Shown here: piece by piece, positions 6,862 to 26,671 of the stretch
How positions within the stretch are numbered: the first letter of the stretch is position 1
Layout: the number at the start of each line of letters is the position of its first letter
The notes under the pieces: model-generated
Databases searched by the model: none
Told to the model about the DNA's origin: nothing
Seen by the model: the letters and a program-made list of their open reading frames with translations, nothing else
DNA from: Oikopleura dioica
Lineage: Eukaryota > Animalia > Chordata
DNA: 64,000 nucleotides
Reading direction: 5' to 3'
NCBI GenBank assembly: GCA_907165135.1
Contig: OU015568.1
Span: 1,364,001 to 1,428,000 of the forward strand
Translations under genes and position numbers: made by a program

Positions 6862-8513
6862 ATGAGTGAGAACAGCTTCCTCTTCACTTCAGAATCCGTC
6901 GGTGAAGTAAGTACAGAAATACCCAGTAAAATACATGTAGAGATAAAAAGAGAAGAAATAGCGGAAATGGAGTTTTATTACCCTCTCATTGCGTAATAAA
7001 AATGAGCACGTGAGTCTGAAAACGACTCTATTCTCTGTTCAAGTCCAGTTTTTACGGTCCACATCCGTTATATTCGGCTTTCTCGCTGCCCTTTAAATTT
7101 CGGAATAGTCTTAGAATAAAATTCTCACTCTTGTACTTGAAATCGTTCTAATTCTTACATGCGTTTTTCAGGGACACCCAGACAAGATCTGCGACCAGAT
7201 CTCAGACGCCATCCTCGATGCCCACCTCGAACAGGATCCCCGTGCCAAGGTCGCTTGCGAGACTTTCGCCAAGACTGGTTACATCATGGTCGGTGGTGAG
7301 ATCAACTCCAACGCCAATGTCAACTACCAAAAAGTCATCCGCGAGACCATCAAGGTATTAAAAATCTCCCTCTTGTCCTTCTTAAAATTTTCTTCAGCGA
7401 ATTGGCTACGATTCCGATGAAAAGGGATTGAACTACTTCACCTGCGCTGTCCAGAACGGCCTGGAGCAACAGTCGCCCGATATTGCCCAGGGAGTCCACG
7501 AGAACCGATCCGATGAAGACGTCGGAGCCGGTGATCAAGGACTGATGTTCGGATACGCCACCGACGAAACTGAAGAGAAGATGCCTCTCACTCTCATGCT
7601 CGCCCACAAGCTCAACATCCGAGTAAGTCTTGTTTCTCTTTCCTTAGTCCCTGTTGTTCTCAACCAGTTTCTTACCCCCTTCTTCAGATGGCCGAACTCC
7701 GAAGATCTGGTGAAGAGAAATGGATTCGACCAGACTCAAAGACCCAGGTCACCATTGAGCACAAGATCATCGGAGGAGCTGTCGTCCCCATCCGAGTCCA
7801 CACAATCGTCATCTCCGTCCAGCACGCCGACTACATCACCAATGAAGAGATGCGAGCCATCCTCAAAGAAAAGGTAACCACTTCCTCCCTCTCTTCTTTC
7901 CTAACCATCTCTAGGTTGTAAACCAAGTCGTCCCCGCCAAGATGCTCGACGAGAACACAATCTACCACATCCAGCCCTCCGGCCGCTTCGTCATCGGTGG
8001 CCCACAGTCCGACGCTGGTCTCACCGGCCGTAAGATCATTGTTGACACTTACGGCGGCTGGGGAGCCCACGGTGGTGGCGCCTTCTCCGGCAAGGACTAC
8101 ACCAAGGTCGACAGATCTGCTGCCTACGCCGCCAGATGGGTTGCCAAATCCCTCGTCAGCGCTGGTCTCTGCCGACGAGTCCTCGTTCAGGTCTCCTACG
8201 CCATCGGTGTTTCACATCCTCTTTCTCTTCATGTTGAAACCTACGGCTCCGGACGAATCCCAGGTAATTTATCACAGCAATTTCAGCTTCTAACTCGCCT
8301 TTTTCAGATTCCCTGATCAAGTCGGTCATCGAAGATAACTTCGACCTCCGACCCGGCCGCATCGTCAAAGACCTCCAGCTGGACAAGCCTATCTACTCCA
8401 AGACCGCCAGCTTCGGTCACTTCGGCCGCAAGGGATTCACCTGGGAAGAGCCCAAGACCCTCGACTTCAACGATAACGTCAAGGCTGCCTTGGCCGCCGC
8501 CCCCGGCAACTAA
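6862..8513 (+). CDS. MAT: S-adenosylmethionine synthetase (methionine adenosyltransferase)
   Basis: [10 protein letters not shown]|[28 protein letters not shown] and [23 protein letters not shown] signatures; multiple GT-AG introns; stop 8511-8513. Confidence 0.98.
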
Positions 8514-16600: not shown

Positions 16601-18616
16601 GTGCGCGGAGAAGACAAGTTCTAAGGAGTTGCGGTCATCTTATTAAGATTCATCTCAAGTTAAGGAGCTAAGGCTTAAGGACTACCGCTGGACATCTGTT
16701 CGACCGTACTTGGTCATCTTTCAACTTGAAAACCGAAACTAAAGAGCTTTCTTACCGGAGAAAATATTCAGCAGAGTAACGACATTGTTAACTGTAGTTT
16801 CCGCAGCTCCACTCGTCGAAGCCCAGGAGATCACGTGTTCTGCGTCTATCCAACACATTCCTTTAATCTGCGTCGAGTGGACCGAGAGCTCTCGCTCGCA
16901 TTTGCCAGAATAGAGGTCGATTATTTGAACGTTTCCGTTTTTCATCCCCCTAGCAGCACGTGGTCGCCAGTTCAAAAAGTTCTTCGTCGAAACGGGCGGA
17001 CCAAGAGAGATTATTGTATCTCTTGGAGCGATGGAATGACCGTTTTGCCCAGCAAGACGGAGAGTCAAGTTTCTCTGCTCGACTTTGCCGAGCTCCATAT
17101 CAGTAGCGGTTATCTCTGTAGGACCCAGAAGACGGCCGAGGAAATCTCCATTCGATTGGTTGCTCTCCTTCAAGACAAAGAACTTGCCATCGTTTTCGCG
17201 CTCTTGGCAGACTTCTAGCTTGAATTTGAGGACCCGCGAATCAGTCAGAAGCAAGCTTATATTCGTCTCCGATCTCGGATCGACGATCAATCCTCTGCAT
17301 TTGCACCAGCCGGTCATGCGCAAACCATCAGACTGGCAAGCGTTCTGGAGCTTAAGCCCTTTGTCGATGTTCTTTTCCGAGATCTGAAAAGCCCTGACGG
17401 AGATGGAAGCATTTTCATGAGCAGCGTACAGAGCTGGTCGGTACTTAGCCGCGTAAATAGAAATTATCGGCGACGTCGACTTGTCCATCTCGACGAGAGA
17501 GAAAATATCGAGCGTTGCCATGTCAAAAATGACGATCGCTCGACGAAACGCAAGATATGCCATGGTTGGCATTGACGGCATAAGTCCGAAGCCGACACTT
17601 TGCGAGAAGTCGGCCAGATCGGATGATTGGGGAAGATGGTCACGGGAAAAGACAAACTTTCGCTGGGGATAATCGAGGTACAGTCGACGAGGACTTTTCG
17701 CCGGTTCTTTCTCGATAGAAAAGTCGATGATCTTCAAAATCGCCTTGTCGGTTTGGACAAAGAGCTTGCTTTGCTCTTGGAGATCAACGACGAGGCGAAG
17801 GATGTTCTCGTCTCTTCCAAGATCGAGCTTCGAGTTCCAGACAAAAGCGCCAGTTGTTGAGTTGATCAAGAAGATCTGAGAGCTCGTCGCGGCAACGAAG
17901 AACTGCGACGTGTTTTGCGTTGATGCAAAGTCTGTGAGCCATTGAAGGGATGCAACGGTCGCTGGGAGAGAGGCTTTGGAGACGATCTTGTTCGCTAGAA
18001 CGTCCCAGACGAGGATGTCACCATTGTTGTACGAGGCTAAAAGTCGCGAGCGTTGGCAACCTTTATTCAGGGCTCCACTTAGGAGTTAACGCTGGAACGC
18101 ATATCGACCCATTTTTGGGTAAGGCGCTGAAATATGCCTTCAGAAATCATCATTTTCTAGTTTTTAAACAACAGATGAGAGATTTTATATGTATCTATCC
18201 TTGTAGTTTATTGTCTAAAGATCTTGTTTATGATAAAATTTGGGTTGATGTAAGCAAGAAAACGGGTCTACGGCCTCTCACCCAAAAATGGGTCGATATG
18301 CGTTCCGGGAAAAAAACCATTTCATGCGTTCCGGCGTTAAGATTTCTACAATATTTTTCTAAATAAAAATGAGGATTTGAATGGAAATAAAGATCGTCCC
18401 TGGCCCTGGTTCAAATTTTAAGATATCGATTTTCCGTCCTGAATTCGAATTGAGAGAGATGACTGATTGTCCTGTCACTTGTTCTCGAATATCAATGAGG
18501 TCGTTAGCAGAAATCGCTACAAGGCCGGACCAAGAAGCATCCACTCCAAGTGTGTCGATGCCGAAGCTGGCGCCCGCCTGCTGCCGGGGACGGATTCTGT
18601 CTTCTAGGGCAGTCAT
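13671..18616 (-). CDS. WDR11: WD repeat-containing protein 11
   Basis: DASWSGLVAI, RLLASYNNGDILVWDV, AYLAFRRAIVIFDM, ALYAAHENASISVR and C-terminal ASLIGAGKILDGVELLMI are collinear with WDR11 from recall. Multi-exon; two introns carry MITEs. Confidence 0.88.
14959..15717. mobile_element. Near-perfectly palindromic MITE, TTAA TSD, in a WDR11 intron
   Basis: TTAA|GGGTAATCCTATACATCGGCGCGG ... CCGCGCCGATGTATAGGATTACCC|TTAA. The arms are almost identical over more than 300 bp, which explains the mirror-image ORFs 15048-15290(+) and 15272-15628(-). Confidence 0.95.
18090..18336. mobile_element. piggyBac-like MITE, TTAA TSD, in WDR11 intron 1
   Basis: TTAA|CGCTGGAACGCAT ... ATGCGTTCCGGCG|TTAA, plus a 26-bp subterminal inverted repeat GGAACGCATATCGACCCATTTTTGGG. 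Confidence 0.85.
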
Positions 18617-19235: not shown

Positions 19236-20894
19236 ATGATTCTAGTCAAAGGAAAAGTCGTTGAATGCGTCGGCGACGAAATGATGGCAATTATTTGGGA
19301 GAAGATAAAGTACAAACTCATCCTGCCATATGTCGACTTTGGCAAGAACCTGGAGGTCTTTGACTTGACCTTAGAGAACAGAGTGATTTATGGGGATGAG
19401 ATTGTTCTCGATGCTGCAAAGGTGACCGCATCAATACTGTAACTATCAAGAAAATAAATGTTCAAGGCGATCAAAGAAGCAGGAGTTGGCATCAAATGTG
19501 CGACGATAACTCCCGATGAGAAAAAATGCGAAGAAATCGGCAAAGTGCTCCGCTCTCCGAATCATATTATTAGAGAATATCTCGGTGGCATCATTTTACG
19601 CGAGCCAGTGATCTGCGAAAATATTCCTAAAATCATCAAGAGTTGGGTCAACCCGATTTATATTGCAAGACATGCATATGCTGGAAATAAGGTACAAAGC
19701 CAAATGAGGAGTATTTCGATAGAATCAAAATATAATATATGATATATTATATATCCTTTAAAATTCGAGTTATCTTCATATTCAGGATGTTCATGAAATG
19801 TGCATCGAGGGAAAAGGTCAACTGAAGCTGAGTTTCGTGGATGAAATCAGCGGAGTTCAAACCGAAAAGGTAATCAAAGCCAGTTAATCTCGGCATTATA
19901 TAAACACTCGTCATTTCCGCTAAAAAGGACGAAATATACGTTCATCTCTAAGTCGCCCTAATCGCCTTAAGATCATCGCCGAAGAAACGAAAGATGGCGT
20001 TATTGGCGCGACTTTCATCGAAGAGTATGCGATCCGAGCATTTGCTCGGGGATCGATGGAGTTTGCTGTTGAAAAATGTCTTCCTCTCTTTCTATCGACG
20101 AAATCGACGATTTTGAAAAATTACGATGGGCTCTATCAGGTCTCATACGCGAAAAACAACGTCTTATAATACTCATTTTAGAGAGTATTCCAAGAAGTCT
20201 ATGAAAACGAGTTCAAAAGTCGATTCGAAGAACGCGGTATTTTCTACAACTTCATTTTGATCGATGCGATGGTTGCCAAAGCCATGAAGTCAAAAGGAGG
20301 ATTTGTCTGGGCGATGAAAAATTACGATGGGGATGTACAATCAGACTTCGTATCCCAAGGTTTGTAAAGATCTGGCAATCTAAACTTGAAACTCTTCAAG
20401 GATTTGGTTCGCTCGGACTAACATCATCATACTTGATGACAGACGACAAGAAGGTCATCCAGACTGAAGCTTGCCACGGAACTGTGAAAAATCATTTCAA
20501 AAAGTATCTCCGCGGAGAGCCAACGTCAACTAACCCTATCGGTAAAACTCTCTTTTTTTCACCATCAATTCCAACCTTCAATTCAAGCTTCAATCTTCGC
20601 CTGGACGAAAGCGCTGGCTCATCGAGGTCAACTCGACAAAAACGAAGAACTCGTTAAATTTACTGAAATTGTCGAAAAAGGTTGATGATCAAAATTGACC
20701 ACTGAAAGACTAAAACTTAAGTTTGTATTGCTACAATCGAATCTGGCTGCATGACGAAAGATCTCGCCGCCGCGCTGAAAAACAACGAATTCGAGTCCAT
20801 GACCGAGAACGACTACTTGACTACTTTCGAATTTCTCGACAAGATCGCGCAAAATTTGCGTTCCTGTATGATCCTTCCCAAAATGAACATTTAG
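19236..20894 (+). CDS. IDH1/2-like: Divergent isocitrate dehydrogenase, NADP-type (IDH1/2 family) paralog
   Basis: [67 protein letters not shown] and [11 protein letters not shown] are collinear with IDH1 across 7 exons. Confidence 0.93.
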
Positions 20895-23686
20895 ATCCAT
20901 CTCTCTTTACAATAAATATAATTTCCCCTACCTTTGTTGTGTTTAACCGGATCATCCTTGTAGAGCACCGGGTCGGCCCGAAATTCAACAGCTTTCAGCG
21001 GCATCTTGCCAAACTCTTTCACAAAGAAGTTGATGCACTCTGATCGCTCGACCATATGTCCCGGGTCGACGGAAATGGAGACTTGCTGAGAGCACTCGGT
21101 GCACTTGAATTTCTTCCTCGGTGAGACTTTTAGAGGAGCTTTCGCGGTTTGATTAGCGATCACGAAATTCATCAGAATATCTTCGCAGTTCATGTGCTCA
21201 TCTACCCAGTTGACGATTTTAGCTAAAGCAGGATTTAGACGAGGTTAAATAGCGAGATCAAGCAAGAAGCCCTTTGATCAATTTTATTGCTATAGTCTAT
21301 AGCCTATAGAAAAAGCTCACCTGGTGTTTGATGATAGTACGCATGCGAAAAGTACTTGTGATAGAACGCAGCTCCAGTCAAAATCATACTGTTAGCATTT
21401 GTCCATTCACTTTCGTATTTCCAATTTTGCTTGTCTTCTTCCCACAGATGCAGTCTATTCGGATACCCGACCAGTCTGTCTGGATATTCTCGCCAGACCT
21501 GGTAGCTGAGAGGAAAATAAAGATGAGCTCTAGCGCGTTCTTTTCTTACCCAAATTGAATCTCATCCGCCGTCAACATTACAATATCGTCATCGATTGAG
21601 AGAACGCAGCTGGTTTCGATCTCGTCGTAAGGATAAAATCGATTCGAGAGGACGTTCTTCTTCGTCTGAATCACTCGAATCGGAATAGAAATTTGAGGAA
21701 AGGTAGAGGCAAGAGGCGGTGCCTTCGATTGATTGTTCCAGATCACGAGTACTTTTTTCAGCCCCGGTGCCTTGGCGACGGACTCGATGACCCGGTACAG
21801 TGATTCGACTCGATCGTAGGCCAAGATCACTGCCGTAAAGCCTTCGTCTGGCGCTAGAATAGATATCGTTAGGTATTATCATCACTTTGGGACGATTTCT
21901 TAAGGGGCGGGTCGACGAGAATCGGAATTTTTAAACCAATTTTCCCGAAAAACCCGATTCTGTAAACATATTTTGACTTATCAGGTGAGAACAGAAGGGT
22001 ATTTAGAAGACAGCGGCAACGAGTTTCACGAGTTTTTGCAGGAATTTCGTGCACTTCATTACCAAATGTGGCATAAAAAAAATAGCGAAAAAATCGCTAA
22101 ATTGCCAAAATTGCGATTTGGGGTCCACTTTGAGACACGATTACGCCCATTTTTTCTGGACAAAATTTTTTCTAGTTTTCGCCGCTGTATTTTTCAAACC
22201 CTTTTCTACTCACCTGACCAATCAGAATTTTTCATTCAAAGCTAGTTTTCCCGGAATTTTGGTTTAAAAAATCCCGATTCTCGTCGACCTCCCCCTTAAG
22301 TCGTAGAATGTGCTCCTAGTATGACTTCCTAGTAGGAAGTTCCTACCTATTCTGTTAAGAAACAGCGGCGACTGAACTCCTCTTATCGGTCCATTCCAAA
22401 AGTCAACACCGTGGACCTTATGCGGAAAGAGTCGATCATGGAGATGCCCCAGAAACCCTTCGAAAACAGCGCCCATGGAAGAAAAGAACTTGTCAAAAGT
22501 CCAGATGCCGCGTTCTCGAGCTCGAATGAGGTCTTCCTTTGGAAACTTTTGAATGAAATCGGCGATTTTATGCATGTCAGAAGGTCGGAAAGTGGTCGAG
22601 AATTCATTCCAGTCAATTTTTTCTACGAAAAGCTCTTGTTGAATCGTCGAAAAAAAATCGAAAAGTACCTTGAAATGGAAGCTGTAACGAGTATTTTCCA
22701 ACGATAATCGGGTAGCAGCCGGTTCCAAGAGCAGCGGCAAGCATTTTGTTCTGGAAACCAAATTTTGCCGAGTAAGAAACAAGACAGAATTTCGCCTTCT
22801 TCATCGAAAGAGGAATTTCAAAAGATTCACCGGTTATTGAGCAGTATGAGTCGGCAGATCCGCATTTGTTCAGTTTCAGCTGGCTGAGACCAGAAATTGA
22901 TCTGAGGCCGGTTTCAATCGAGGCTAGATTAATCGTCATCAGAAGTTGCTAAAAGAAGAACTCACATTCGAAGGGACCGAGAGAAATCAGATCATATGTT
23001 CGCTCTTCTTCGAAAAAATCTTCAGACAAATCCACGATCGGACGAAGGAAATGTGAATAGAAAGAGATCGGAATGTCGAATCCATGTCGAACCGTAAAAT
23101 CGGTCAATGTCGAGGTCGCCACGAGCGCCTCTCCGGTCTCCAGCTCGAAGTCTTTGACACTGTGACTCGAGAAGATCACCCAGTTTTTCCCGCCATTCCA
23201 GTAGGGCAAGTTCTTCAGAACAGCAGATGCTTTTTGAATGTTTTCGACGCGAGAAAGGGAGAGAAAATCGATTGGCGGAAGTCGTACACAAGCAGTTTCA
23301 GCGTTGTTAGTGTAATACTCGGATTCGGCCACCCATTTGTAAAGCGAGTAGAATTCGCGCGAAATATCCGGCGTTACCTTCTTCTTTCCGCCATCGTGAA
23401 AGTGTTGAAGAGGAGGAGCATAAACAGTCAGCTTTGTACAGTTGAAGATATCCCAGCAGTTCGACCAACGACAGTCGGAATCGAACGGATCCGTGTCGAC
23501 CAGATTTTCAACCTTTAGAAGAGGGAGAGAACTCAGCCGATCAAGTCGAAGGTTTTGGTAGTTGGTCTTCGGAGGAGCAGTTGCCCAGAGATAGATGGAG
23601 ACCAATACGAAGGAGTAGAAAAAGGTCGACTTCCATCGCTGGAAGAACTCGGCCAGGGAGCTGGACTCCTTCTTTTCTTTGTGCAT
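20891..23686 (-). CDS. EXT2: Exostosin-2 (heparan sulfate copolymerase)
   Basis: N-terminal TM anchor; [61 protein letters not shown] and [10 protein letters not shown] match EXT2 from recall. Confidence 0.95.
21904..22295. mobile_element. MITE, TTAA TSD, ~45-bp TIRs, in an EXT2 intron
   Basis: TTAA|GGGGCGGGTCGACGAGAATCGGAATTTTTAAACC ... GGTTTAAAAAATCCCGATTCTCGTCGACCTCCCCC|TTAA. Confidence 0.88.
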
Positions 23687-24296: not shown

Positions 24297-25450
24297 TTAA
24301 GAAGTTCGCATGTCAATGTAGGCCTTCTTGACGACATCGAAACCAGAAAGAACACCAGCTCCAGCAATACCTGGGGAAGAGAGGGATTAGCGGGTTAAAA
24401 GAAGGGATAGAGCTTACCTCGGAGGATGTTAGCGCCAGCACCCTTCATGAGGGACATGAAGCCTTCGTTCTTGATGACCTGCATACCGCAGTCAAGGGAG
24501 GATTTGTAGTGGACACCAGTTCCAGAGGTCATCATCATTCGACGTCGGACGGTATCGATGGGGTAGGAGGCGAGGCCAGAGACGACGGTGACGGCTAAGG
24601 GTTAAATGTTAACCTAGGAAGGGATGACTGTTGGCTTACCCCATCCGAGGAGGAAGGAGACGATGAAGGAGGCATCAGGTCCGAGGAAGATGGGCTTGAT
24701 GGTATCGTAAAGACCGAAGTAGAGACCTAGATTAGAAGGGATGAGGAAAAGTGGAGGAATGGATGAGCGTTACCTCGGTAGATGAAGATACCGACGCAGG
24801 AGATGGCGAAACCTCGGTAGAGACCGGCAATACCGTCGGAGGCGATGGTCTTCTTGTAGACATCGATGAGACCGTTGTACTGTCGCTTACCGTCCTTGCC
24901 TGAAGATGAAAGATTAACAAAGCGCCTTCGGAGTGAAGAGAGGGGGCGAACAAAAGGCTATAGCATATGCTTACCCTTGGCGTCGTTGGCGAGTCGGGTT
25001 CGGGCGTAGTCGAGGGAGTAGACGACGGTGAGGGACATGGAACCAGCGAAACCACCGGAGGCGATGTTGGTGGCGAACTTGACGGCGTTGCTGGCGTCCT
25101 TGGAGGTGGCGAAGAGAGCCTTGATCTGTCCCTTGAAGGCGAAGTTGAGGGCCTGGGTGGGGAAGTATCTGAGAAGACCGTTAGTCTGAGTCTGAAGGAA
25201 TCCGAGCTTACCGGAGGACGTTGGCAAGGTTTCCTCGCCAGAAGGATCCGACACCTTCAGAAGCCATGGTTCGTCGGGTGCAGTCGACAATACCGGTGTA
25301 TCGTCGGTCAAGGACGCCCTGCTTGATCATCTCATCCTGGTTCTGGACGAGGAGCTTGACTCGCTCGATGGGGGCGGCGGCGGTCTTGGAGACACCAGCG
25401 GCAACGCCAGAGAGCATGAACTCTTCGAAGAAGTTAAGCTTCTTGGCCAT
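24297..25450 (-). CDS. ANT: Mitochondrial ADP/ATP carrier
   Basis: [54 protein letters not shown] and [15 protein letters not shown]. Strong C-ending codon bias. A non-coding upstream exon has its donor at about 25796. Confidence 0.98.
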
Positions 25451-26671
25451 GGCTAAAGCGGTTTCAATCTGAAAAAAGAACGAACGGTTAGAAAAAGCTT
25501 GAAAAAAATAATTTCGGAAAGAAAAAAGGAAAAAAAAGAGAAAAAGAAAGCCGCTTGCGGCTTCCAACTCAAATGATAAGGTCATATTCTGTTTGGTCCT
25601 CTTTTAGCTCAATTTGAGCTGTTCAAAGAAGAATAGAAATAATTTTGACTCGAAAGCCGCAAGCGGCTTTTTCGCCTTGGTAAGAACCTTTCAAATCATT
25701 TGAGCCGTAAAAGTGCCATTTCTCGAGTCGTTAAAAGGTCGATTTCTATTGATAAAGTTCGTTTCTCTAAGTTTTGAAAAATATTAAGTTAGCTTACCCC
25801 TGATCAACGCTCGACAAGAACTGAAGCTCAAAGGGGTAGGCCATGTTTTTATTTCTCAAAATAGGTGCAAAGAAGGAGGCACAGATTACTATCTCTCGCT
25901 CAGTAATACAGTAAGAAAAACACTTCTGTCTAAAAGTAGGACGCTTTGCAAAACGCGTAGGCGTTAATTTCTGCCTTATTTGGGCACGCATTATTATGTA
26001 ACTTGGTCAACACGCCGGGGCGACCCAAACCGGCTACAGCTCAAGGAATTTGAATTCTGATTGGTTACATAACTAGAAAATATAAAAAGGTTAAAATTCG
26101 ACCTCTCTAAATGTTCTCTCAAGGCGAATGAGGGGAAAGTGGTTTGGAACGAATTTTTTGGTGAGGAAAGAGCGCCAAATCTGAAGATGAAATGATAAAA
26201 ATGAAATTTCTAACTGAAAATGCTCTTTTTTGGATTTTTATTAAATTTTCAAATCTGTCAAGTTTAATCATCCGTTGACTCAAAAATAACACTTTTACGT
26301 CTCTGGTCATAATCTCTTGTAAAAATCTGAAGATTCTCTGACGGTTACTTGGGCGCTGCACTATTTGTGAAGAAATTGGAGCTTTAGCCAATCAGCGCTT
26401 CAAGCCGCCGCATTCTGACGAACCGGGACGTGGCAACGGACGCTCAGACTGCTCCACTCGCAAAATTCGCGCGTTATGTAACTTCCATCCTTTTCGCTGG
26501 AACGGGGTCTTTCAGGGACGAGTTACAGTTTTCTTATATAAATACCAATCAGGGCTTTGAGATAAATGTGACTTTTGAAGAAACTTGAAAATCTCCAAAA
26601 TGAAACTAGCGAATTTCTCAAGAATGTCCCTAGTTTGGCGTATTTTTCGCTCAAGGGGATCTCTGTTTTAA

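Follow-up and report, generated by a model that had tools for sequence, protein, structure and literature searches.

An IDH1-type gene of Oikopleura dioica with a rebuilt active site is held by purifying selection and may encode an enzyme of altered chemistry

INTRODUCTION

The closest described relative of the protein treated here is human isocitrate dehydrogenase 1 (IDH1; PDB entries 1T09 and 1T0L). Its gene, an IDH-like gene on the + strand, occupies positions 19236 to 20894 of a 64,000-nucleotide stretch of the Oikopleura dioica genome (contig OU015568.1, positions 1,364,001 to 1,428,000), and this whole stretch is referred to below as the window. In IDH1, the β-carboxylate of isocitrate is touched by Tyr139, Lys212′, and Arg132, with Lys212′ being the likely base; the 2′-phosphate of the cofactor is held by Arg314 and Lys260, and the active sites are common to two subunits (PMC10302481). 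The pocket floor is flat and formed by Gly97, Asn96, and Ser94, while Arg100 and Asn101 contact oxygens of the ligand (PMC9449373), and Arg314 is paired with Asp253′ (PMC4813160). The variants G97D and Y139D produce 2-hydroxyglutarate (2-HG) (PMC5849696); in R314C, the loss of NADP+ affinity abolishes isocitrate oxidation, and no 2-HG is formed (PMC4962051). A natural departure from NADP specificity is found in Ostreococcus tauri, whose NAD-specific type-II IDH (OtIDH) carries Asp/Met at positions 314/315 and Ala/Lys/Gln at positions 253/257/260 (PMC4813160).

With human and other vertebrate IDH1, the window protein shares fold, length, the lack of a presequence, the ligands of the metal and of the isocitrate carboxylates, Lys212, the dinucleotide core, and the C-terminal segment. 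It differs from them in having Lys139, the motifs AGNKD, SPNHIIRE, and TVK(R)NH, and the substitutions D253A, Q257K, and R82K, in the absence of the peroxisomal targeting signal 1 (PTS1) tripeptide, and in the deletion of two residues before Ser94 and of one residue in the clasp domain. The two positions altered in the tumour neomorphic forms G97D/N and Y139D are altered here as well (PMC5849696). However, the changes in the window protein are germline, fixed, and long selected, they affect both positions simultaneously along with about 14 other sites, and they introduce His and Lys instead of Asp or Asn, with Arg132 and Arg100 being intact. OtIDH resembles the window protein in Ala253, Lys257, and the loss of Arg314 (PMC4813160), but it combines Asp/Met at 314/315 with Gln260 and the catalytic tyrosine, whereas the window protein has Asn/His, Lys260, and Lys139. 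A likeness of idea exists to the β and γ subunits of mitochondrial NAD-IDH3, which are IDH-family subunits selected without full catalytic competence; these belong to another subfamily, that of the type I heteromers. As a variant within the known IDH family, the gene is of interest to IDH enzymology.

RESULTS AND DISCUSSION

Gene model and family placement

When read from the letters and assembled across GT-AG junctions, the gene encodes a eukaryote-type NADP-IDH of 415 residues without an internal stop. It comprises eight exons, and not seven as stated in an earlier note on this DNA; the coordinates of the gene, the position of its second intron, and the intact reading frame given in that note were all reproduced. 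All seven introns follow the GT-AG rule, measure 41 to 102 nucleotides (45, 94, 102, 42, 41, 46, and 41 in order), and carry stops or break the frame. The parts of the gene are as follows, with residue names in human IDH1 numbering and L005 and L006 denoting orthologous loci described below.

19236-19421, + strand: exon 1, residues 1 to 62; start codon at 19236, the start being conserved in L005 and L006
19467-19691, + strand: exon 2, residues 63 to 137; T77, S94, N96, R100, R109, and R132 together with H97, I98, E101, and K139
19563-19565, 19575-19577, and 19689-19691, + strand: codons of H97, E101, and K139 in exon 2, the last being the final codon of the exon
19692-19785, + strand: intron 2, 94 nucleotides, GT-AG, stops inside; 61 and 83 nucleotides in the other lineages, sequence not conserved
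19786-19869, + strand: exon 3, residues 138 to 165; clasp-domain strands, the most diverged exon; its first residue, D, corresponds to human R140
19972-20139, + strand: exon 4, residues 166 to 221; K212, S213, and T214
20182-20359, + strand: exon 5, residues 222 to 280 plus one base; D252, A253, K257, K260, M269, D275, and D279
20263-20265, 20266-20268, and 20278-20280, + strand: codons of D252, A253, and K257 in exon 5
20401-20541, + strand: exon 6; C308, H309-V312, K313 (20487-20489), N314 (20490-20492), H315, and N328
20588-20680, + strand: exon 7; SIFAWT...EK
20722-20894, + strand: exon 8; stop codon TAG at 20892-20894; IDH1-type C-terminal segment, to which lineage-C RNA reads map
20911-20916, + strand: AATAAA, a putative poly(A) signal read directly from the letters, 17 nucleotides past the stop codon

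The exons were searched singly with phmmer against PDB chains, and native human IDH1 numbering was taken from chain 1t09_A (residue n corresponds to human n for 63 to 85, to n+2 for 86 to 137, and to n+3 from 173 on). Exons 1, 2, 4, 5, 6, and 8 matched only chains of the IDH1/IDH2 type; the 28-residue exon 3, searched alone against the PDB, gave no match. Pfam Iso_dh matched exons 4 to 6, and with a profile built from 109 type-II IDHs hmmsearch yielded 479 bits over residues 2 to 408, i.e., homology to the family over the full length. Placement relative to IDH1 and IDH2 was based on summed PDB bit scores in place of a named tree; these amounted to approximately 310 for cytosolic IDH1 versus approximately 275 for mitochondrial IDH2, with the biggest gap in the C-terminal exon 8 (37.7 to 41.4 versus 24.8 bits in phmmer). 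Judged by these scores, the gene traces back to the cytosolic IDH1 branch within the type-II NADP-isocitrate dehydrogenases, and IDH1 is its closest solved relative. A mitochondrial presequence is absent, and the C terminus reads -MNI.

Three active-site elements are changed on a conserved scaffold

The residues binding the metal and the substrate's malate-like core are intact (R100, R109, R132, D252, D275, D279, K212, T214, S94, N96, and T77), as is the dinucleotide core (K72, T75, H309-V312, H315, K260, and N328); T327 is retained as well. Apart from K72, T75, T214, H309-V312, T327, and N328, all of these had been listed as retained in the earlier note, and alignment to human IDH1 structures and to the type-II profile confirmed this. 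Specifically, the isocitrate and metal ligands T77, S94, R100, R109, R132, D252′, D275, and D279 are kept in all three lineages in which the gene was recovered (termed A, to which the window belongs, B, and C).

The same alignments bore out the substitutions G97H, N101E, Y139K, and R314N, and residue mapping places the altered residues at catalytic, substrate-pocket, and 2′-phosphate positions, as had been proposed. The catalytic loop aligns gap-free and at top posterior probability on the profile segment rhafgdqyratdf, which leads to Y139K: RHAYGDQYRATDF is represented, again without a gap, by a changed 13-residue counterpart in which GDQYR reads AGN(K)KD. In the pocket floor, SPNGTIRN has become SPNHIIRE (G97H, T98I, and N101E), and in the 2′-phosphate motif TVTRH has become TVKNH (T313K and R314N). 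Changes beyond those given in the earlier note are R82K, G136A, D137G, Q138N, R140D, N213S, D253A, Q257K, C269M, and A308C. The acid-base pair of Lys212′ and Tyr139 is therefore broken: Lys212 is kept, and each of the three lineages has Lys at position 139. When the corresponding Tyr140 of pig IDH2 was mutated, activity was reportedly reduced severely. Among the 2′-phosphate determinants, Arg314 and Gln257′ are replaced, while His315 and Lys260′ are kept. All three changed elements are fixed in the three lineages; the unusual residues are identical throughout save for two conservative cases, position 138 (N/N/K) and position 313 (K/R/R).

Column statistics were compiled from the 148 nearest cluster representatives, which are mostly chimeric or frameshifted fragments and were used for column counts, and from 120 bacterial type-II IDHs. 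Among the representatives, G97 was conserved in 146 of 148 sequences, T98 and N101 in 145 each, and R82 in all 148. Position 139 showed 97 Tyr and 25 Val, the latter looking like intron read-through in genomic open reading frame fragments. In the bacterial enzymes all these substituted positions are invariant (120/120), and D137 and Q138 are likewise essentially invariant in both sets. Overall, 10 of the 34 columns of the exon 2 region with at least 95% conservation are changed in the window gene, and this pattern of changes at near-invariant sites is more than chance.

Lys139 does not depend on the splice model

The codon of Lys139 (AAG) closes exon 2 and directly follows the codons for HAYAGN. 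The earlier note had considered that a different splice might restore Tyr139. All GT-AG combinations near intron 2 that preserve the frame and contain no stop were therefore enumerated for the window and for two orthologous loci, and none of them puts Tyr at this position; all combinations that retain R132-H-A-Y also retain AG(N/K)K. Since the Lys codon lies within exon 2 and no enumerated combination gives Tyr, Y139K is independent of the junction, and at the level of the sequence a splice artefact is excluded.

The gene is selected and transcribed

Orthologues were recovered from marine metagenomes by a word search with exon 2 and a metagenome scan. A Tara Oceans contig, L004, is nearly identical to the window (lineage A); L001, L002, and L006 form lineage B, and L005, which carries the complete gene, represents lineage C. 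In all three lineages the product has 415 residues and the gene has the same eight exons with the same junction phases, with introns differing in length and sequence. The lineages apparently lie within the Oikopleura dioica species complex; a GC content of 40%, introns of approximately 45 nucleotides, and relatives in marine metagenomes accord with this species. Their pairwise identities are as follows.

A-B: protein 77.6%, coding nucleotides 74%
A-C: protein 78.3%, coding nucleotides 75%
B-C: protein 84.1%, coding nucleotides 85%

The earlier note had proposed the ratio of nonsynonymous to synonymous substitution rates (dN/dS, ω) as a check for neutral evolution. The synonymous rate dS is saturated in the pairs that include the window lineage. 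A joint GY94+F3X4 fit to the three lineages gave an ω of 0.095 with a log likelihood (lnL) of -3147.4, compared to an lnL of -3347.2 with ω fixed at 1 (kappa fixed at 2). For the unsaturated pair B-C, NG86 gave an ω of 0.13 (bootstrap 0.09 to 0.19). A pairwise maximum likelihood estimate from Biopython for A-C (0.77) was unstable and was dropped in favor of LWL85, NG86, and the joint fit. The gene is under strong purifying selection in at least three deeply diverged lineages.

These data bear on the view that the gene is a decaying or neutral duplicate, a pseudogene, for which the loss of the catalytic Tyr could be cited along with changes at residues whose mutation inactivates human IDH1. A frame of 415 codons is intact in three lineages at saturated synonymous sites, and given this and the low ω a pseudogene is excluded; the splice sites are conserved, transcripts are present, and we count this explanation as refuted.

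Four RNA runs with the same species label as the window, but from a different lineage, were available. Only a handful of reads mapped to the window, at less than 95% identity, on conserved parts of exons 6 and 8. Their unmatched extensions of 30 and 8 nucleotides and their variants at 20816, 20822, and 20828 are exact L005 sequence; in the single-cell run, a few reads lay on exon 6, and their one variant, T>C at 20471, is the L005 letter. Because the reads carry exact L005 sequence, the lineage-C orthologue is represented in oligo-dT RNA libraries, and at least one lineage transcribes the gene.

Two side observations concern the lineages themselves. The RNA runs differ from the window by more than 10% in coding sequence yet match lineage C exactly; the species label therefore covers deeply diverged cryptic lineages, between which read mapping fails at default stringency. 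Intron 5 of lineage C (L005 positions 1179 to 1220, 42 nucleotides) is in frame and stop-free, and its retention would add 14 residues between exons 5 and 6; its 41-nucleotide counterpart in the window cannot be read through.

An active enzyme with altered chemistry is tentatively favored

The changes can be described as three rebuilds of the active site. In the first, the catalytic-tyrosine loop has gone from GDQYR to AGN(K)KD, the Tyr of the Tyr/Lys acid-base pair becoming Lys. The second concerns the helix of the substrate-pocket floor, where His sits on the "bed" provided by Gly97 and Glu stands beside Arg100. In the third, the 2′-phosphate site loses the Arg314-Asp253′ pair through R314N and D253A and gains Lys/Arg313 and Lys257. 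On the retained scaffold, such a protein would presumably still bind NAD(P)(H) as well as a metal-dicarboxylate substrate and remain catalytically active, while the standard, Tyr-assisted oxidative decarboxylation of isocitrate would no longer run at normal efficiency. Our preferred reading, to which we give close to an even chance, is that the gene encodes an active IDH1-derived dehydrogenase or reductase whose chemistry is altered and whose NADP specificity is loosened. Its most likely role would be that of a 2-oxoacid/2-hydroxyacid oxidoreductase for which 2-oxoglutarate, isocitrate, or a closely similar compound is the substrate and which has a relaxed preference for NADP over NAD; we infer as candidate roles such an oxidoreductase, including one working on the 2-oxoglutarate/2-HG couple, or an IDH using Lys as the acid. 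The earlier note had likewise spoken of a retained enzyme with altered chemistry. Retention stands, given an ω of 0.095, three lineages keeping the frame, the junctions, and the unusual residues, and transcription in one of them; that proposal as a whole is partly supported.

Several observations weigh against this reading. His97 and Lys139 differ from the known neomorphic residues, which are Asp and Asn in tumours; R132 is unchanged, and it is the loss of this residue that underlies most 2-HG production; and K260, H315, and T327 stay NADP-type. The pKa of Lys is near that of Tyr, and Lys might serve as the general acid, which would make the protein an ordinary if slow IDH. Oikopleura proteins are fast-evolving in general, so that part of the divergence is lineage background. 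Finally, no RNA read spans any exon junction, including 19691/19786, in the mapping of the different-lineage runs to the window, and the splice model consequently rests on comparative evidence.

Production of 2-HG by the window protein is possible. A narrower version of the argument, in which a natural neomorphic-type IDH1 has been fixed by selection as a dedicated NAD(P)H-dependent 2-oxoglutarate reductase or D-2-hydroxyglutarate dehydrogenase, appears unlikely to us. In that case, the decarboxylation machinery would have given way to Lys139, His97, and Glu101, and cofactor use would be altered by the re-fitted 2′-phosphate site; if true, D-2-HG or a related hydroxyacid would be a regulated physiological metabolite and not an oncometabolite.

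The distribution of kept and changed residues over the two subunits also invites the idea of a non- or half-catalytic partner, which would form either homodimers or dimers with a canonical IDH and supply K212′, T214′, and D252′, its own site binding a regulator. IDH subunits share their active sites (PMC10302481), and in the window protein the trans-supplied K212, T214, and D252 are all kept, with Tyr139 and Gly97, acting in cis, being changed; moreover, the gene is constrained despite the loss of the canonical dyad. Its own site, however, keeps all ligand-binding arginines and aspartates. The clasp-domain exon, which makes the dimer contact, has diverged further than any other, and this argues weakly against obligatory heterodimerization with a canonical IDH. 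We regard a partner of this kind as quite improbable.

Distribution and the search for a canonical IDH

An exhaustive phmmer search with exon 2 against 1.84 billion cluster representatives returned identities above 60% only in the gene's own cluster, at a resolution of 50% clusters that hides nearer relatives within that cluster. No similar sequence outside this gene group turned up among the representatives and the metagenomes, and a word search with a mixed alignment (bacterial IDH rows plus the window and L001 exons) returned bacterial IDHs only. In the literature, no such IDH was found for Oikopleura or as a natural neomorphic-type paralogue. Two candidates for a canonical IDH of the same organism were rejected: L003 (P0003), a canonical, intron-bearing IDH, has a GC content of 55% versus approximately 40% here, and L007 is bacterial, with methyltransferase and phosphatidylserine genes as neighbors. 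Among the IDH fragments surfacing in the searches, none was a canonical IDH1 of the same animal; the rest of the genome was not searched. One further IDH from the search of cluster representatives, P0005 (504 residues), is an unrelated gene model in which residues approximately 150 to 290 are duplicated in tandem; it has WKRPYGINRN for WKSPNGTIRN (S94R, N96Y, and T98I) and is either a naturally degenerate type-II IDH or a mis-assembled model.

With both canonical candidates belonging to other organisms and no canonical IDH1 of this organism among the IDHs that surfaced, the gene, which the earlier note called a paralogue, may be the only IDH1 of the animal; it could itself be a fast-evolving IDH1 orthologue and the cytosolic IDH of the animal, still converting isocitrate to 2-oxoglutarate and NADPH, with Lys139 as the acid and Lys/Arg313 as the phosphate contact. 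Isocitrate, metal, and most NADP contacts are all kept, the gene is nearest to cytosolic IDH1, above all in exon 8, a basic residue stands beside the lost Arg314 in all three lineages, and strong purifying selection fits a housekeeping role. On the other hand, essentially no variation at Tyr139 and Gly97 was seen among the 268 other type-II IDHs examined, and R314C by itself abolishes the forward reaction (PMC4962051). The joint change of 10 of the 34 near-invariant columns around the site looks like a re-fit of the pocket and not like drift. A conventional cytosolic IDH is conceivable but on balance doubtful, and an active enzyme with altered chemistry remains our tentative preference.

Genomic neighborhood

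The IDH-like gene is flanked directly by a WD40 gene and a gene for an exostosin-like glycosyltransferase. The surrounding features are as follows.

7428-7877, + strand: exon of an S-adenosylmethionine (SAM) synthetase central domain, approximately 12 kb upstream of the IDH-like gene
16739-17869, - strand: single-exon WD40 open reading frame, 376 residues, 1.4 kb from the IDH-like gene
20891-23686, - strand: convergent exostosin-like glycosyltransferase gene (Pfam GT47 at 22949-23686 and GT64 at 20891-21193)
25208-25585, - strand: mitochondrial-carrier exon, approximately 4 kb downstream of the IDH-like gene

The exostosin-like gene is also found, in synteny, downstream of the orthologue in L001. 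In the window, its last reading frame ends within one to two bases of the IDH stop codon, so that the two genes meet or overlap at their 3′ ends. A metabolic cluster with SAM synthetase and the carrier was considered; at distances of approximately 12 kb and 4 kb, and with unrelated immediate neighbors, the arrangement was judged to be chance.

Implications

The Tyr/Lys pair and Gly97 are regarded as fixed in IDH1 and IDH2, and changes there are known almost only from tumours, in enzymes that are crippled or produce 2-HG. The gene described here represents a natural experiment in which the same positions, together with compensating neighbors, have been changed and then held by selection across saturated lineages. 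For enzymology, it is useful for asking whether Lys can act as general acid, what is selected for by a pocket floor bearing His, and how the Arg314/Asp253′ pair can be exchanged for Lys313/Lys257. If the protein is the sole cytosolic IDH of the animal, an "invariant" Tyr would be shown to be replaceable. More broadly, the gene opens the question of a physiological, IDH-derived 2-oxoacid reductase in animals.
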